The notes beneath the pieces were generated by a model. It worked only from the letters and a program-made list of their open reading frames with translations, made no database searches and was not told the origin of the DNA. From assembly GCF_000006765.1 (NCBI RefSeq), contig NC_002516.2: DNA of 64,000 bases; one strand, given 5' to 3'. Below are positions 13,683 to 21,148 of this stretch, piece by piece. The stretch comes from Pseudomonas aeruginosa PAO1 (GTDB lineage Bacteria > Pseudomonadota > Gammaproteobacteria > Pseudomonadales > Pseudomonadaceae). Each line of letters opens with the position of its first letter. Position 1 is the stretch's first letter. Both the position numbers and the translations under genes were made by a program.

Positions 13683-15095
13683 TCAGCCGGCCCGTCCCAG
13701 GGCGGGGTCGCCCAGTCCCTGCGGCTGCCGGCGACGAACCACGTAATAGGCCAGGTAGCAGGCGGCGATGAAGCCGAAGCCCCAGTACAAGGACGGCCGC
13801 TGGGTGGGATCGAGGGCGAGGAAGACGAACAGCGAGCAGCACACGGCGATGCAGGCCAGCGGCACCAGCGGGAACAGCGGCGCGGCATATTTCAGCTCGG
13901 CGACCGTGCCGCCGCTGGCCATGTGCTCGCGGCGGAAGCGGTATTGGGCGTAGGCGATGACGATCCAGGTGACGGTGCCGGACATCCCGCTCACCGCCAT
14001 CAGCACCATGAACAGGGTGTCGGCGGCGACCACGCTGGTCAGCAACGAGAGCAGGGCGAAGCACAGGGTGATCAGCAACGCGTAGAGCGGCACGCCGCGC
14101 GCGCTGAGCTTCGACAGGCCGCGCGGGGCCATGCCGGACCTGGACATCGCCCAGAGGATCCGCGTCGAGGCGTACAGGCCCGAGTTGCCTACCGAGAGGA
14201 TGGCGGTGAGGATGACGAAGTTCATCAGGTCCGCCGCGTAGGGAATCCCGACCATGTCGAACACCTGCACGAACGGGCTTTCCATCAGCCCGGCCTGTTG
14301 CCAGGGAATGATGGCGGAAAGCACGACGATGGCCAGCACGTAGAAGATCAGTACGCGGAACACCACGTTGCGCACCGCCCGCGGGATGCTCTTCTCCGGT
14401 CGCTCGGTCTCGCCGGCGGCGACGCCCATGATCTCGCAACCCTGGAAGGCATAGACCACCGTCATCATCACCGCGAACACCGCCGACAGGCCGTTGGGGA
14501 ACAGCCGCTCGCCGACCAGGTTGGAGAACATCGGCGCCGGCGCACCGCTCTTCAGTTCGATACCGCCGAAGATCACCAGCCCCCCGACCACGATGAACAC
14601 CAGGATCGCCGCCACCTTGATCCCGGCGAACCAGTACTCGGCCTCGCCGAAAGCGCGGGTCGCCAGGGCATTGAGGGAGAACAGCACGACCACGAAGAAA
14701 CCCGACCATAGCCACACGGGCACCTCCGGGAACCAGCGGGTCATGAGCATCCCGGCCGCGGTGAATTCCAGGCCTACCGTGGAGGCCCAGCTCATCCAGT
14801 AGACCCAGCCGATCATGAAGCCAGTCGCCGGGCCGATGAAACGCGTCGCGTGGGCCTGGAACGAACCGGAGACCGGCATCTGCACCGACAGCTCGCCGAG
14901 GCAGACCATCACCAGGTACATCAGCACCCCGGCCACCAGGTAGGCCAGCACCGCGCCGGCCGGGCCGCCCTGGTTGATGGTCACGCCGGAGCCCATGAAC
15001 AGCCCGGTGCCGATCACCCCGCCGAGGGACAGCATGAAGATGTGGCGGCTCGCCAGGGCCCGGGTGAGTTGCAGCCTTTCCTTGCCGTCAGCCAT
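13683..15095 (-). CDS. APC-family amino acid permease (LysP/RocE-like)
   Basis: LASRHIFMLSLGGVIGTGLFMGSG, LGELSV, FGEAEYWF, YAFQGCE; about 12 TM segments; GGAGG RBS. Confidence 0.92.
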   Translation of the reverse strand: MADGKERLQLTRALASRHIFMLSLGGVIGTGLFMGSGVTINQGGPAGAVLAYLVAGVLMYLVMVCLGELSVQMPVSGSFQAHATRFIGPATGFMIGWVYWMSWASTVGLEFTAAGMLMTRWFPEVPVWLWSGFFVVVLFSLNALATRAFGEAEYWFAGIKVAAILVFIVVGGLVIFGGIELKSGAPAPMFSNLVGERLFPNGLSAVFAVMMTVVYAFQGCEIMGVAAGETERPEKSIPRAVRNVVFRVLIFYVLAIVVLSAIIPWQQAGLMESPFVQVFDMVGIPYAADLMNFVILTAILSVGNSGLYASTRILWAMSRSGMAPRGLSKLSARGVPLYALLITLCFALLSLLTSVVAADTLFMVLMAVSGMSGTVTWIVIAYAQYRFRREHMASGGTVAELKYAAPLFPLVPLACIAVCCSLFVFLALDPTQRPSLYWGFGFIAACYLAYYVVRRRQPQGLGDPALGRAG

Positions 15096-15278
15096 GGCGC
15101 ACCTCCGGACGAGGGTACGCGCAGGGGTCTTCGAGATGGCTCATTATTCTTGTCTCCACTCTGTCAGAGGCCGTGTCTTGCGCACGGATGAGCGGATTAT
15201 TGGCGGCGGATGTAAGACGCCGTTGAACGCGCGGATCGAAGATGTAAAAAGCTGTAAGGAAGTTGTTCGCCGCGCCGC

Positions 15279-17531
15279 TCAACCGGCCGCTGAGTCGGCT
15301 TCGCCGAGGAAGCCGGCGCGGCGCAGGGCTTCGGCGCCGTCGCGGCGCAGGCTACCCAGGCGTGCGCCCCAGGCCCGCGGGTCGACCCCGGCCGCGCCCA
15401 GGGCCTCGCGCTCCAGCTCGCCCAGGCCGGCGCCGAGCGCCACCAGGCCCATGGAGTGGCAGCTTCCGGACAGGCGATGGGCGATGTTCGCCGCCTCGGC
15501 CAGGTCCGCCTGGTCCAGGGCTTCGGCCAGCAGCGGCAACTGCTCGTCCAGGCTTCCCAGCAGGTTGCCCAGCAGTCCGGCGAGCTTGTGCCGCCCCAGC
15601 AGGCGGCGGTGGGTCTCGAGCATTTGCCGGTCCAGCGCGGCGTCCACCGCAAGCGCAGGCACGCTGGTGCCGACCTCGCCCAGCGCGCGGCGCAGCTCGT
15701 CCATCCGCAGGGGCTTGCCGAGCACCCCCTGCATGCCCGCGGCGAAGTACCGACGCACCATGTCCGGCTGGATGCTGGCGGTGAAGGCGAAGATCGGCGT
15801 GGCGCGGTTCAGGCCGTCGAGCTGCCGGCGAATCCCGGCGCAAAGCTCGAGGCCAGCCATCCCCGGCAGGTGCATGTCCAGCAGGATCAGGTCGAAGCGC
15901 CGCTGCCGGCACAACGCCAGGGCCGGCCCCGCGTCCTCGGCCAGCATCACCCGGTGGCCGTCCCGCTCGAGCAGGCCCTGGGCCACCTCGCGGTTGAGCG
16001 CCACGTCCTCCACCAGCAGCACCTCCAGCGCAGACACCGATGCCGCCGGCGGCGTCGCGCCGGACAAGCTCGCCAGCGCCAGCTCGATCTCGAACCAGAA
16101 CGTGCTGCCCTGGCCGACCCGGCTTTCCACGCCGATCCGCCCGCCCAGCGCTTCCACCAGCCGCTTGCTGATCGCCAGGCCCAGGCCGGTTCCGCCGTAA
16201 CGGCGGGTCACGGCGTCGCCGCCCTGGGTGAAGCGTTCGAAGATGCGTTCGCGCATTTCCTCGGGAATGCCGATTCCATCGTCCGCGACGCTCAGCCGCA
16301 GGCGCTCGCTTCCTGCGCTGCGCGCCAGCCGCTCGACGCGAACGCGCACCTCGCCGGCCTCGGTGAACTTCACCGCGTTGCCCAGCAGGTTGGTCAACAC
16401 CTGGCGCAGGAACTGCTCGGCGCCGCGATGGCCGTCATGAACCTGTGGGTCCAGCCACAGGTCCAGCCGTGTGGCGTTCTCCCGCGCCCGTGGTTCGAGC
16501 AGGGTGAGGACGTCCTCGAGCAGGCTCCGCAAGGAAAAGTCCACCGCTTCCGGCACATCCGGCGCTTCCTCCAGCCGGGCGAAGTGGAGGACCTCGTTGA
16601 GGATCGCCAGCAGTCCCTCCCCCGCTGTCGCCAGTGCCCGCAGGCGCTGGCGGTCACGCTCGCCGAGCGATGCCTCGCGCAGCAGCTCGGCCATGCCCAG
16701 GATGCCGTTCAGCGGGGTACGGATCTCATGGCTCATGGTCGCGAGAAAACGGCTCTTGGCGCGGTCGGCGGCTTCCGCCTGGTCCTTCGCCCGGCGCAGG
16801 CTGGCGGTGCGCCGCTCGACCTGCCGACGCAACTCGTCGCGATCGGCATCGCGCCGGCGGCGGTCGGTGCGCAGGGCCTGGCGCATGTCTTCCAGGGCGG
16901 CGGCGACGGCGTCGATCTCATCGCGCTCGCGGTCCACCTTGTCCAGTCGCAGCGGCTGTTGCAGGTCGCCTTCGGCGATATGCCCGGCGAACTCGGACAT
17001 GCGCCACAGATGGCGAGTGACCAGGCTGTGGAACAGCCAACTGAGGGCCACCGCCAGGCCGCAAAGGAAACTGCCCATCCACAAGAGGCTGGCCAGGCCG
17101 CCGGAAACCAGCCGGCGATAGACCGCCGCCAGGTCGATGGCGATCTCCAGCTCGCCCAGTTGCCGACGCTCGCCCCCCGGCGGCTGGTAGCTCAAGGGAA
17201 AGCGCTCGACCCGCAGCATGCCGCGTGGACGCTGGTCGCCCTGCAACAGGTTGAAGTCGGCGCTTTGCAGGCTGACACGGGCGATGTCGGGGAAATCCCC
17301 GAGGCCGCGCAACTGCACGTTCAACTGCTCCTGGTTGAGATCCCACAGGCTGCGCTCGAAGCTGGCCAGGTAGCCGCTGCGGATCAGTTCCAGGCGCGCC
17401 TCGATCTCGCGCATTTCGCGGCGGTATTCGAAGAACAGCTGCACGGCGCCGGCGAGGACGGTGAAACACAGGCTGAACAGCAGCACCCGCCACAGCAGGC
17501 GCCGCGCCAACACTCCGCCGTGGCCGCTCAC
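15279..17531 (-). CDS. aruS: Unorthodox hybrid sensor kinase (2 TM, HAMP, HisKA, HATPase, REC, HPt), 750 aa from GTG 17531
   Basis: MSHEIRTPLNG H-box, NLLGNAVKFT, DDGIGI, GGTGLGLAI, receiver LLVED/LLDMHLPG/KP, HPt IAHRLSGS; GTG start overlaps the TGA of the upstream SBP gene. Confidence 0.85.
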   Translation of the reverse strand: MSGHGGVLARRLLWRVLLFSLCFTVLAGAVQLFFEYRREMREIEARLELIRSGYLASFERSLWDLNQEQLNVQLRGLGDFPDIARVSLQSADFNLLQGDQRPRGMLRVERFPLSYQPPGGERRQLGELEIAIDLAAVYRRLVSGGLASLLWMGSFLCGLAVALSWLFHSLVTRHLWRMSEFAGHIAEGDLQQPLRLDKVDRERDEIDAVAAALEDMRQALRTDRRRRDADRDELRRQVERRTASLRRAKDQAEAADRAKSRFLATMSHEIRTPLNGILGMAELLREASLGERDRQRLRALATAGEGLLAILNEVLHFARLEEAPDVPEAVDFSLRSLLEDVLTLLEPRARENATRLDLWLDPQVHDGHRGAEQFLRQVLTNLLGNAVKFTEAGEVRVRVERLARSAGSERLRLSVADDGIGIPEEMRERIFERFTQGGDAVTRRYGGTGLGLAISKRLVEALGGRIGVESRVGQGSTFWFEIELALASLSGATPPAASVSALEVLLVEDVALNREVAQGLLERDGHRVMLAEDAGPALALCRQRRFDLILLDMHLPGMAGLELCAGIRRQLDGLNRATPIFAFTASIQPDMVRRYFAAGMQGVLGKPLRMDELRRALGEVGTSVPALAVDAALDRQMLETHRRLLGRHKLAGLLGNLLGSLDEQLPLLAEALDQADLAEAANIAHRLSGSCHSMGLVALGAGLGELEREALGAAGVDPRAWGARLGSLRRDGAEALRRAGFLGEADSAAG

Positions 17532-18304
17532 CAGGCGTCCGCGCGGTTGCCGGCGAGGCGCCGATAGTCGCGCACGCTGTCGTCCAGCCAACGCTGGATG
17601 CTGCCGTCGTCGCGATAGCCACGCAGGGCCCGGTCGATCTCGTCCATCTTCGCCGCCAGCGGCGAGTGCCGCGAGACCGCCACCCGCAGGTAGTCCACCG
17701 TCAGCGGTTCGGGCAGCGCACGGATGTTCTCGCCGCCGGCCAGGCGCTCGGCGAACAGCGTGCCGGTGCGTCGTTCGTGGGCGATGTAGTCGATGCGCTG
17801 GCGCACCAGCTTGCCGAAGTTCTGTCGGCTGTCGGAAACCCATTCGACGTTGCCGTGGCGGCCGACGAAGCGGTCGAAGTCCGCCCCGTAGCTTTCGCCG
17901 AACAACAGCCCGCCGCGATAGCCGGCGAGGTCGCCGAGGGATTGGATGCGCACCGGCCGCTGGCGGTTGTAGAAGATCGCCACCTCCTCGCGCAGCACCG
18001 GCTCGGCGGAAAACGCCAGGTCGCGATCGCGCGCGGGCGTGCGGTAGGCCAGTATCAGGTCGACCCGTCCGGCGGCGGCGTCGAGCAGGCAGCGCCGCCA
18101 GTTGCCCAGCACCACCACCTCGACCCGGTAGCCCAGCGCGCCGAACAGCCGCTTCACCAGCTCCGGCGCCAGCCCCCGGACCTGCTGGCCGTCGCTCCAG
18201 GAAATCGGCGGGTATACCGGATAGTCGCAATAGCGGATGGTCTCCGCAGCCTGTGCCAGGCCGCCCAGCAGCCATCCGCAGAGCGCCAGCCAGCAGGCCT
18301 GCAT
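17528..18304 (-). CDS. Periplasmic substrate-binding protein (family 3, amino-acid type)
   Basis: Signal peptide ending AQA-AE, DYPVYPP, NWRRCL...GRVDL, RIDY; no adjacent ABC permease or ATPase. Confidence 0.85.
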   Translation of the reverse strand: MQACWLALCGWLLGGLAQAAETIRYCDYPVYPPISWSDGQQVRGLAPELVKRLFGALGYRVEVVVLGNWRRCLLDAAAGRVDLILAYRTPARDRDLAFSAEPVLREEVAIFYNRQRPVRIQSLGDLAGYRGGLLFGESYGADFDRFVGRHGNVEWVSDSRQNFGKLVRQRIDYIAHERRTGTLFAERLAGGENIRALPEPLTVDYLRVAVSRHSPLAAKMDEIDRALRGYRDDGSIQRWLDDSVRDYRRLAGNRADAW

Positions 18305-18307
18305 GGC

Positions 18308-19045
18308 TCAGGCGTCGCTGGCCGCGGCGGTGAACAGGTAGCCGGCGCCGTGGATGGTGATGATCAGTTGCGGTTCGGCCGGGTCGTCGCGCAGCTTGCG
18401 ACGCAGGCGGCCGACCAGCACGTCGATGGAGCGATCGCTGGGCAGCCACTCGCGGTTGCGGATCTGGTCCATCAACTGGTCGCGGCTCAGGGTATGCCCG
18501 CTGTTGCGCAGGAAAGCGCCGAGCAATTGGAATTCGCCATGGGTGAGCAGGGTTTCGTTGCCCGCGTGGTCGATCAGGCGGCGCCGGTCGGCGTCCAGCA
18601 GCCAGTCGCCGAACTGCCTGAGGGCCTGCCGGGCGGGGCCGGCGCTGGCCTGGGCATGGCGCACCCGGCGGATCAGGTTCTTCGCCCGCGACACCAGTTC
18701 GCGCGGGTTCAGCGGCTTGATCACGTAATCGTCGGCGCCGCACTCCAGGCCGACGATGCGATCGATCTCGTCGTTGCGCCCGGTGATCAGGATGATCCCC
18801 ACCTCGGAGCGCACCCGCAGCTCGCGGGTCAGGGTCAGGCCGTCCTTGCCGGGCAGGCGGATGTCCAGCAGCACCAGCTCGACCGGCTGGCCGAGATGGG
18901 CGCACTCGGCAAGGCAGGCTTCCGCCTGCTCGGCGTTGCCGGCGCAGAGGACGTCATAGCCCTCCTCGCCGAGATAGGCCTGGAGAAGCTCACGAATCAC
19001 CGGGTCGTCGTCGACCACCAATACGCGCGGAACCATCGCCATCAC
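18308..19045 (-). CDS. aruR: OmpR/TorR-family response regulator
   Basis: VVDDDP, LVLLDIRLPG (phospho-Asp), GADDYVIKP, wHTH RSIDVLVGRLRRKL...ITIHGAGY. Confidence 0.9.
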   Translation of the reverse strand: MMAMVPRVLVVDDDPVIRELLQAYLGEEGYDVLCAGNAEQAEACLAECAHLGQPVELVLLDIRLPGKDGLTLTRELRVRSEVGIILITGRNDEIDRIVGLECGADDYVIKPLNPRELVSRAKNLIRRVRHAQASAGPARQALRQFGDWLLDADRRRLIDHAGNETLLTHGEFQLLGAFLRNSGHTLSRDQLMDQIRNREWLPSDRSIDVLVGRLRRKLRDDPAEPQLIITIHGAGYLFTAAASDA

Positions 19046-19159
19046 CTTGCGCCTCCGGCGGGCCGGGGCGTTTCTTGTTCTGGGTTGTCGGACGGTGGGC
19101 GGAAGGGGCCGGGGCGCCTTCCGCTGCCAGCAGCAGCCTATCCACTACTGAACGAACGA

Positions 19160-19807
19160 TCAACAAGCTTCCATCGCACGCCGGAAGCGGCGATGGGCGC
19201 CCGCCTCCAGGCCATCCACCCAGGCCTCGCAAATCTGCACGCCCTGCCGCGGCGTGAAGGTCGCGGGATTCAGCCCAGACTCCAGCCACAGCCCGTCGAG
19301 CAGGGCGCTGAGGCTGATGGCCGCCAGTTCCGCGTCGAAGTCCGCCCAGCCGCCCTCCTCCGCCAGTTGCCGCAGCACGCCGACCAGCAGCGCCCGGTAC
19401 TCGCCATAGGAATGGTCGTGGACCCGCCCGATCGCTTCGATGCTGCCCACCGCACCCCAGAACGCCAGCCAGGCGTCGAGCAATTGCGGATCGAGCAGCT
19501 CGGCGGAGAAGGATGCCTCGAAGAACGCCGAGAGCCGCGGGCGGGCGCCGCCCGGCGCGGTGTCGATGGCACCGCGGAGCAGGCGCATGACGCGTCCGGT
19601 GACCGCCAGGTAGGCCTCGGCCACCAGCGCGTCCTTGCCATCGTAGTGGTGATTGATCAGGCCCACCGATACCCCGGCCTCGGCGCAGATCTTGCGCACC
19701 GAGGCGCCCTGGAAGCCATGCCGCTTCAGGCAGGCCAGGGTCGCCTCGATCAGCAGCGCCTTGCGCTGCTCTGGCTCCAGACGGGAAAAGCGCACTTCCT
19801 GGTTCAT
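19160..19807 (-). CDS. TetR-family regulator (BetI-like C-terminal domain)
   Basis: HTH ASVRKICAEAGVSVGLINHHYDGKDAL; WLAFW and ALLDGLWL motifs of the BetI-type ligand domain. Confidence 0.9.
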   Translation of the reverse strand: MNQEVRFSRLEPEQRKALLIEATLACLKRHGFQGASVRKICAEAGVSVGLINHHYDGKDALVAEAYLAVTGRVMRLLRGAIDTAPGGARPRLSAFFEASFSAELLDPQLLDAWLAFWGAVGSIEAIGRVHDHSYGEYRALLVGVLRQLAEEGGWADFDAELAAISLSALLDGLWLESGLNPATFTPRQGVQICEAWVDGLEAGAHRRFRRAMEAC

Positions 19808-19883: not shown

Positions 19884-20975
19884 TCACTGGCTGGCCCAGG
19901 CGTTGAAGCGCTCCTCCAGCTCCTCGCCGTGCTCGACCCAGAATTCGTCGTCCATCGCCAGGCCCTGCTCCAGGTTCGCCGGCGCGGTCGGCACCCAGCT
20001 CGCCAGTTGCGCGGGCAGACGCTGGGCGGCCTGGCGGTTGGTCGGCCCGTAGGGAATGTTCTCGACGTAGCGCACCTGGGCATCCGGGGCATTGGCGAAG
20101 GCGATGAAGCGACGCGCCTCGGCGCCGCGCTTCGAACCCTTGACCACCGCCCAGTAGTCCATGCCGTACAGGCTGCCCTGCCATACCAGGGCCAGGTTGC
20201 GCCCCGCGCGGTGGGCGTCGGCGATGCGCCCGGTGTAGGTGGACGTCATCACCACGTCGCCGGCGGCCAGCCACTGCGCCGGCTGCGCTCCCGCCTCCCA
20301 CCACTGGATGTAGGGCTTGAGCTGGCCCAGCTTGGCGAAGGCACGGTCGGCACCAGCGCGGGTCGCCAGCAGCGGATAGACCTGCTCGCGTGGCACGCCG
20401 TCGGCGAGCAGGGCGAACTCCAGGTTGTAGATCGCCCGCTTGCGCAGGCCGCGCTTGCCGGGGAAGCGCTGGACGTCCCAGAAGTCGGCCCAGGACGCCG
20501 GCGGCTGTTGCAGCCGGTCGGCGTCGTAGCCGATCGCCACGCCCCAGACCAGCGCGGCGGAACCGCATTCCTGGGCGGCATTGGCGATCAACTGCTGCTT
20601 GCCGCCGATGGCCTGCCAGTCCAGACGCTCGAACAGGCCGTCGTCGCAACCGCGCGCCAGGTCCGGCCCCTCGACCTGGACCAGGTCCCAGTCGGCGTGA
20701 CCGGTGTCGGCCATCACCTTGATCCGGGCCATCTCGCCGTTGTACTCGCTCTGCACCACGGGAATCCCGGTCTGCTGCGTGAAGGGCTGGAAGAACGCCA
20801 CCTCCTGGGCCTTCTGTCCGGCGCCGCCGTAGCCGACCACCACCAGGCCATCATCGGCCTGGACCGGCGCGAGGCCGCCGAACGCCAGCAGGACGGCGCC
20901 GAGCAGGACGCGGCAAGGAAAAACCGGGTGCGGACGGGCGCTGGCCGCGCGGCGCAACGGAAAGGAACGGTTCAT
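19884..20975 (-). CDS. PotD/PotF-like polyamine-type periplasmic binding protein (363 aa from MNRSF)
   Basis: VVGYGG, WDLVQVE, PASWADFWD..FPGKRG, DYWAVVKGS, YGPTN; GAGGAG RBS. Confidence 0.88.
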   Translation of the reverse strand: MNRSFPLRRAASARPHPVFPCRVLLGAVLLAFGGLAPVQADDGLVVVGYGGAGQKAQEVAFFQPFTQQTGIPVVQSEYNGEMARIKVMADTGHADWDLVQVEGPDLARGCDDGLFERLDWQAIGGKQQLIANAAQECGSAALVWGVAIGYDADRLQQPPASWADFWDVQRFPGKRGLRKRAIYNLEFALLADGVPREQVYPLLATRAGADRAFAKLGQLKPYIQWWEAGAQPAQWLAAGDVVMTSTYTGRIADAHRAGRNLALVWQGSLYGMDYWAVVKGSKRGAEARRFIAFANAPDAQVRYVENIPYGPTNRQAAQRLPAQLASWVPTAPANLEQGLAMDDEFWVEHGEELEERFNAWASQ

Positions 20976-21148
20976 GTGCGTCTCCTCTTGTTCTTGTTGT
21001 GGAGTGGATCGCAGCGAGCCGCCGGGAAGCGGCCACGGGACAGAAACTATCCAGTCGATTTTAAAAAAACAAGTTGATTTTTTACTGATGGTAAATTCAT
21101 ATCCTGTTTCTGAAGCGCGCCGCGAGAACAACAAGAAGGACGCCAACC

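Follow-up and report, generated by a model that had tools for sequence, protein, structure and literature searches.

Organisation of the aruRS locus

We analysed a 64,000-nucleotide window of Pseudomonas aeruginosa PAO1 (NC_002516.2), in which aruR and aruS code for AruRS, the regulatory system that controls the arginine transaminase pathway (PMC11113362). A separate gene lies between the two and encodes a substrate-binding protein (SBP) of the SBP_bac_3 family. This separately translated, conserved SBP is probably the signal-recognising part of the AruRS sensor. All coordinates are positions in the window, and all three genes are on the minus strand. Their features are as follows:

18308-19045, minus strand: aruR, gene of an OmpR-family response regulator, with an open reading frame (ORF) that opens with GTG
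~18683-19024, minus strand: Response_reg domain of AruR (Pfam)
~18332-18562, minus strand: Trans_reg_C domain of AruR (Pfam)
17528-18304, minus strand: SBP_bac_3-like SBP gene, 258 residues, with its own ATG and its own TGA (ORF and Pfam)
18248-18304, minus strand: predicted Sec signal peptide (SBP residues 1-19), with A-Q-A at its end (inspection of the sequence)
17528-17531, minus strand: GTGA overlap between the SBP stop codon and the aruS start codon, in different frames (tcac on the plus strand)
15279-17531, minus strand: aruS, hybrid sensor kinase gene, 750 residues, GTG start (ORF and Pfam)
17109-17429, minus strand: CHASE5 domain of AruS, residues 35-141, between two hydrophobic segments (Pfam)
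16869-17024, minus strand: HAMP domain of AruS (Pfam)
16080-16760, minus strand: kinase core of AruS, with HisKA at 16566-16760 and HATPase_c at 16080-16421 (Pfam)
15681-16022, minus strand: REC domain of AruS (Pfam Response_reg)
15405-15575, minus strand: HPt domain of AruS (Pfam Hpt)

The stop codon of aruR (18308-18310) and the ATG of the SBP gene (18302-18304) are separated by a 3-nucleotide gap. Because the SBP stop codon overlaps the aruS start codon, the SBP and AruS are probably made in coupled amounts. We consider it fairly likely that the three genes belong to a single operon encoding a three-component sensor. The true start of aruR is probably the ATG at 19042, as in the P. aeruginosa protein P0016, which begins with MAMVPR.

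An initial annotation, made from the sequence alone, had described a family-3 SBP gene with its own signal peptide and stop codon, lying 3 nucleotides from aruR and overlapping aruS by GTGA in another frame. Its coordinates proved exact, and the protein matched Pfam SBP_bac_3 (PF00497) with 42.2 bits for a cut-off of 26.4. The putative signal peptide consists of a hydrophobic core ending in A-Q-A, and by inspection the orthologues have leaders with classic n-region, h-region and AXA motif; the SBP is presumably exported to the periplasm.

The SBP gene and aruS are separate genes

Contigs from RNA-seq libraries of four studies span positions 16900-19200 with neither differences nor gaps relative to the window. 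As these contigs are identical to the window, an assembly error at the stop codon of the SBP gene is excluded: the TGA at 17528-17530 is genuine. The sequencing error at this codon that the initial annotation had envisaged is thereby ruled out. The closest comparison genome (G001, with 88% of sampled words in common with the window) encodes an identical 258-residue SBP ORF. The 90%-identity cluster of the SBP comprises 580 P. aeruginosa members, most of which are 258 residues long, under the NCBI name 'substrate-binding periplasmic protein'.

Two shorter forms were encountered among P. aeruginosa sequences. The P0016 contig carries a natural in-frame deletion allele (~18058-18325) in which AruR (...GYLFTA) is joined straight to SBP residue 83 (DLILAY...). 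The deletion removes the aruR stop codon together with SBP residues 1-82, signal peptide included, and this strain, if traceable, would be a ready-made SBP-null strain. P0005 (13 members) is a 208-residue truncated form of the SBP.

The sensor domain of AruS has been cloned as residues 31-141 of PA4982, with a forward primer starting at the Q-L-F-F-E-Y codons (Cerna-Vargas and Krell, PMC11113362). Residue Q31 of the 750-residue kinase translated here is the first residue of the published construct, and because the numbering matches, PA4982 is the split 750-residue kinase. The initial annotation had suggested that SBP and kinase are fused into one ORF in PAO1; the PA4982 numbering and the split organisation of all 25 orthologous loci (see below) rule this out.

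The tags PA4982 to PA4985 are taken in the same study by AruS, AruR, one transcriptional regulator and PA4985, itself an SBP (PMC11113362); none remains for the SBP gene between aruR and aruS. Similarly, the curated SBP repertoire of PAO1 contains 24 SBP_bac_3 proteins, none of them between PA4195 and PA5076, and has no 258-residue entry (PMC6829864, Supp. Table 1). Judging from these two sources, the PAO1 annotation in common use seems to lack the SBP gene. Because of this absence, the sole AruS-SBP study, which sought an SBP co-sensor of AruS in 2024, tested PA4985, two genes away; the ligands of that protein are gamma-aminobutyrate (GABA) and 5-aminovalerate but not L-arginine, and no interaction with the AruS domain was found (PMC11113362). 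We also observed a spurious ORF of 1208 residues (15279-18905, minus strand) in the aruS frame, open upstream across the entire SBP gene into aruR. Such a frame could mislead gene callers in DNA as rich in GC as this and may be the reason why the SBP has no PA number in these two sources.

Conservation in the Pseudomonas family

Of 151 genomes sampled from the family, 25 contain both the SBP orthologue and an AruS-type CHASE5 kinase, and the other 126 contain neither. The 25 orthologous loci were found in all 14 genomes of the window's genus and in 11 of the 13 genomes of a sister genus. In every one of them, the genes for the response regulator, the SBP and the histidine kinase are adjacent and in this order. 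Comparing the SBP-kinase junction across genomes, as proposed with the initial annotation, gave the same result throughout: the SBP is a separate ORF ending in its own TGA in 25 of 25 loci, and the kinase start overlaps it by 4 nucleotides (ATGA, TTGA or GTGA).

Most Pseudomonas genomes harbour one or two more SBP_bac_3 paralogues that are ~30% identical to the Aru SBP (e.g. G001:C1:2238289-2238927), and the paralogues at five loci sampled from other genera (L026-L030) have neither an AruS-like kinase nor such a regulator beside them. Apart from the AruS-type kinases, the 151 genomes contain just two CHASE5 proteins, both unrelated CHASE5-PAS-GGDEF proteins of ~560 residues.

CHASE5 receptors and SBPs across Gammaproteobacteria

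We searched 301 genomes spread over Gammaproteobacteria with the CHASE5 model, which yielded 31 matches in 25 genomes, and fetched 30 loci. An SBP_bac_3-type gene is found directly upstream, on the same strand, in 21 of the 30 loci. In 20 loci, the upstream ORF is homologous to the SBP subfamily and codes for 240-270 residues, one of the 20 being frameshifted. These homologous ORFs end ~95-130 nucleotides before the CHASE5 match, i.e., right at the receptor start. One locus has a more generic SBP_bac_3 gene directly upstream, and in another the SBP gene is divergently placed.

Some loci deserve separate mention. At L037 (G195:C1:1122091-1122618), the SBP gene is split over two frames and represents either a pseudogene or a sequencing error. 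At L052 (G412:C6; 2170-3288, minus strand), a locus assigned by elimination, a binding-protein gene of the Peripla_BP_4/Peripla_BP_1 type, i.e., of the TorT/LuxP class, takes the place of a family-3 SBP gene upstream of the CHASE5 kinase gene.

Because only 14 of the upstream ORFs match Pfam SBP_bac_3 at E <0.01, the SBPs represent a divergent subfamily. An iterated hidden Markov model (HMM) of the CHASE5-upstream SBPs recovers the Aru SBP and 19 others. The subfamily profile scores the Aru SBP with an E value of 1.7e-86 in G001, and the Aru SBP forms a divergent branch, ~20% identical to the rest. The reciprocal search of the 301 genomes with this profile collected 26 members, 21 of which adjoin a CHASE5 match. 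Of the remaining five, three are located beside other membrane sensors (a GGDEF-EAL protein, a HAMP kinase and a chemoreceptor), another is fused to the ORF of a PAS sensor, and the fifth comes from a short contig. At L065 (G196:C201; 838-3105, plus strand), the N-terminal half of the SBP profile (positions 9-150) falls within a 756-residue open frame that continues into PAS domains. This frame, on a 3.1-kb contig, could be a true fusion of SBP and sensor or result from misassembly or a frameshift.

The outputs of the CHASE5 receptors are HisKA in 22 of 29 and GGDEF/EAL in 3 of 29. The SBP-plus-CHASE5 module thus recurs across Gammaproteobacteria, on histidine kinases as well as on GGDEF/EAL proteins, and since the pairing recurs across receptors with differing outputs, the SBP is tied to the periplasmic CHASE5 module and not to one pathway.

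The binding protein and its putative ligand site

The structural model of the SBP (predicted local distance difference test (pLDDT) 92.9) is a complete two-lobe, type-II binder. Its top Foldseek match is AncQR, an ancestral arginine-binding protein, with arginine bound (4zv1; E 2e-16, template modelling score 0.77-0.81). SBP domains embedded in sensors, namely 3h7m, RmcA and BvgS VFT2, are also among the fold matches, and the fold and profile matches include two reconstructed ancestors from the lineage of cyclohexadienyl dehydratase (CDT), the amino-acid binder AncCDT-1 and AncCDT-3, as well as one bifunctional CDT enzyme. With TIGR01096, the model of the Lys/Arg/Orn transporter SBPs, the protein scores 16.6 bits for a cut-off of 256.35, which places it outside that family.

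We mapped the cleft positions through an HMMER alignment of the SBP to AncQR, two distant homologues with ~19% identity. By comparison with the LAO/HisJ site, Y31 and W69 would correspond to the aromatic pair, T89 to the hydroxyl, R92 to the carboxylate clamp and E177 to the acidic ligand of the alpha-amino group. R92 is two residues off the column aligned by HMMER, yet it is the sole conserved Arg at that place. All 25 Aru-type orthologues share Y31, W69, R92 and E177, and 24 of them share T89. At these columns, different residues occur in the other CHASE5-associated SBP subfamily. This conservation within the Aru branch, together with the difference from the other subfamily, suggests that the ligand is amino-acid-like and specific to the Aru branch. 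Alpha-amino acids with long side chains are the likeliest class, and L-arginine or a close derivative is the obvious candidate because AruRS governs the arginine transaminase pathway.

Two Cys residues, C26 (~18227-18229) and C72 (~18089-18091), are also invariant in the 25 Aru-type SBPs and are absent from the other CHASE5-associated subfamily. They might form a periplasmic disulfide.

The AruS sensor domain

The initial annotation had assigned a kinase-REC-HPt architecture to AruS. Pfam analysis agrees and adds CHASE5 and HAMP, giving the order CHASE5-HAMP-HisKA-HATPase_c-REC-HPt, which is that of a hybrid (unorthodox) histidine kinase. CHASE5 (PF17149) is matched with 56.1 bits for a cut-off of 27. 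The best NCBIfam model for AruR is TorR, with 241 bits, under the cut-off of 275; that for AruS is TorS, with 405.8 bits vs a cut-off of 676.5, and the cytoplasmic core alone is matched.

PA4982 has been described as having a "CHASE 5" sensor domain between two predicted transmembrane helices; the isolated domain was insoluble, and the activation of AruS was stated to be an open question (PMC11113362). Our literature search on CHASE 5 histidine kinases returned this study as the only relevant one. The model of the domain (pLDDT 90.3) has a long helix at its N terminus and another, shorter one, together with four strands and a C-terminal helix. A sequence search of the PDB with AruS CHASE5 gave no match, and Foldseek gave a marginal one alone (E 3.8e-3). 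In a wide structural search, the best match was 4u64, the periplasmic domain of the LapD orthologue CdgS9 (Z 11.3, root-mean-square deviation 3.0 over 111 of 118 residues, 13% identity). Further matches were Cache/PDC modules and the extracellular domain of WalK, with LuxQ lower in the list (Z 6.6). The modelled domain looks more like a PDC module for docking a protein than like a ligand pocket, although a shared PDC fold is no proof of function. Prediction of a complex between AruS residues 28-145 and the mature SBP, with our own alignments A3 and A2, gave scores of 0.09 and 0.01 for a mark of 0.32 and weighs neither way.

Comparison with known periplasmic co-sensors

A parallel with TorT-TorS-TorR, the TMAO-sensing system of E. 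coli and Vibrio, had been drawn in the initial annotation. As far as the logic and the phosphorelay core are concerned, it holds: in both systems, a binding protein is encoded with the two-component genes, the kinase has a HisKA-HATPase-REC-HPt core and the regulator is of the OmpR type, in keeping with TorR and TorS as best models. It does not extend to homology. TorT belongs to Peripla_BP_1/4 and TorS has a helical, HBM-like sensor, whereas the Aru pair consists of a type-II SBP_bac_3 protein and an alpha/beta CHASE5 domain. TorT-TorS is therefore an analogue of SBP-AruS, and because neither periplasmic component is homologous, AruRS represents the TorT-type three-component logic built from other periplasmic parts.

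Nine SBP-stimulated kinases are listed in a 2021 review, namely LuxQ, LytS, TorS, HptS, VirA, AioS, BctE, ChiS and GtrS, none of which has CHASE5 or a family-3 SBP (PMC8050422). In LuxP-LuxQ, HptA-HptS, AioX-AioS, ChvE-VirA and XylFII-LytS, the SBP gene adjoins the kinase gene, as in the Aru locus, but the SBPs are of the Peripla_BP_4, SBP_bac_11 or Phosphonate-bd families and the sensors are not CHASE5 domains. The sole SBP_bac_3 receptor co-sensors in the list of this review are those of ScrB-ScrC from Vibrio parahaemolyticus and GlnH-GlnX-PknG from Mycobacterium (PMC8050422). Their SBP_bac_3 genes also lie beside a signalling gene and not beside a transporter gene; however, ScrC combines GGDEF-EAL with a dCache-like domain and GlnX is a four-helix-bundle membrane protein, whereas AruS is a CHASE5 histidine kinase.

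The SBP_bac_3 (Venus flytrap) fold also serves signalling in BvgS, AgtS (PA0600), RmcA and the Geobacter histidine kinase 3h7m. In these receptors the SBP domain is covalently included, unlike the Aru SBP, which is a separate protein in 25 of 25 loci. As for the sensor domain, that of LapD/CdgS9 is likewise small and PDC-like, and the LapD domain binds a protein, the protease LapG, and not a small molecule. It has no detectable sequence kinship with AruS CHASE5 (13% identity), and LapD further differs in signalling inside-out and in pairing with a protease rather than with an SBP.

Possible roles of the SBP

Several points weigh against the SBP being the receptor of AruRS and against a general pairing with CHASE5. 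Six of the 30 CHASE5 loci have no binding-protein gene within 1.5 kb, and L055 has only a weak match on the opposite strand. The two CHASE5-PAS-GGDEF proteins of the Pseudomonas family (L066 and G140:C43:16792-17112) also lack an SBP gene beside theirs; for the 559-residue protein of L066 (G147:C1; 1670-3349, minus strand), there is none within 6 kb. Given these exceptions, CHASE5 can occur without an adjacent SBP. The sampled genomes are related, so that our counts overstate independence and describe an association, not a formal statistic. Adjacency and co-inheritance indicate a functional link, and the mechanism is not thereby established. The RNA-library evidence consists of contigs and is no proof of transcription, and the putative ligand assignment leans on an alignment with distant homologues, at ~19% identity.

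Even so, because comparative genomics links this SBP family with CHASE5 sensors generally, a co-sensor role is the best reading. The initial annotation had taken the SBP to be the receptor of AruS. This part stands as likely, on the grounds of the conserved stand-alone gene and the CHASE5 association; the fusion that came with it does not, and TorT serves as an analogy only.

Among the alternatives, the SBP-like protein might act on AruS as an accessory partner without binding a signal itself, i.e., as a scaffold, a chaperone or a constitutive inhibitor of CHASE5, with AruS sensing by other means. The CHASE5-SBP association is equally compatible with such a partner, the need for one would fit the insolubility of the AruS sensor domain alone (PMC11113362), and the CHASE5 fold is like those of protein-docking domains. 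However, the putative cleft positions are invariant in the 25 orthologues (24 for T89) and differ between SBP subfamilies as ligand specificity predicts, and the high-confidence model is that of a complete two-lobe binder, which makes this role unlikely.

The gene neighbourhood bears on a second possibility, that of an ordinary orphan transport SBP which serves a distant ATP-binding cassette (ABC) importer and is in the operon merely for level control by AruR. Downstream of aruS are genes for the aminotransferase AruH, the thiamine pyrophosphate enzyme AruI, a coenzyme A (CoA)-ligase-like protein, an acyl-CoA dehydrogenase, an enoyl-CoA hydratase and an APC-type amino-acid permease. Upstream of aruR are those of a TetR/BetI-type regulator (19160-19807, minus strand) and an orphan SBP_bac_8 protein (19884-21146, minus strand), which correspond to PA4984 and PA4985. 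As noted in the initial annotation, no ABC permease is nearby: we found neither permease nor ATPase domains of ABC transporters in the long ORFs between ~4 and 27 kb of the window, and the transporter nearest to aruRS is the APC-type AA_permease. A promoter and terminator scan over 14900-19400 was uninformative. P. aeruginosa does have several orphan SBPs, including the neighbouring PA4985 (PMC11113362), and both the SBP_bac_3 family and the closest structures, which are transporter SBPs, would suit a transport function. This is nevertheless improbable in view of the missing permease and ATPase, of the score of 16.6 bits against a 256-bit cut-off for Lys/Arg/Orn SBPs, of the overlap between SBP stop and kinase start in 25 of 25 loci, and of the location of 21 of the 26 subfamily members beside CHASE5 and of most others beside other sensors.

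That the protein is a periplasmic enzyme with an SBP fold, comparable to the cyclohexadienyl dehydratase PheC, which would make or destroy the signal of AruS, is a very remote prospect: AncCDT-1, AncCDT-3 and a bifunctional CDT enzyme do appear among the fold and profile matches, but the top matches are binders, we identified no catalytic motif, and the tight pairing with a sensor domain suits a receptor better. Finally, an artefactual or strain-specific split, with an SBP-kinase fusion as the real or reference gene, can practically be discarded: the 1208-residue ORF in the aruS frame that could hint at a longer kinase does not share the reading frame of the SBP, the four independent RNA-seq assemblies are identical to the window base for base, 25 of 25 loci are split and the PA4982 numbering is that of a 750-residue kinase.

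Proposed mechanism and implications

In a working model of the SBP as co-sensor, the protein would be secreted and would hold the inducer in the cleft between its two lobes. Loaded or unloaded, it would then dock on the CHASE5 domain of AruS, and docking would alter the kinase/phosphatase output of AruS via HAMP. The signal would pass through the His-Asp-His relay (HisKA, REC and HPt) to AruR, which would in turn govern the arginine transaminase genes aruHI. A broader proposal is that CHASE5 as a class is a docking domain for dedicated, secreted SBP_bac_3-like co-receptors, which would make CHASE5 kinases and cyclases throughout Gammaproteobacteria indirect sensors, with the 258-residue SBP as the receptor of AruRS; to us, the chances that it holds or fails are evenly balanced.

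If the SBP is the co-sensor, AruS would be the first case of a histidine kinase that relies on a family-3 SBP, and the uncharacterised CHASE5 domain would gain a function. CHASE5 receptors could be de-orphaned by ligand screening of the soluble SBP instead of the insoluble sensor domain. The case of AruRS also illustrates that gaps in reference annotations can conceal parts of well-studied regulatory systems, and the overlooked SBP gene makes both the activation of AruS and the general function of CHASE5 directly testable.

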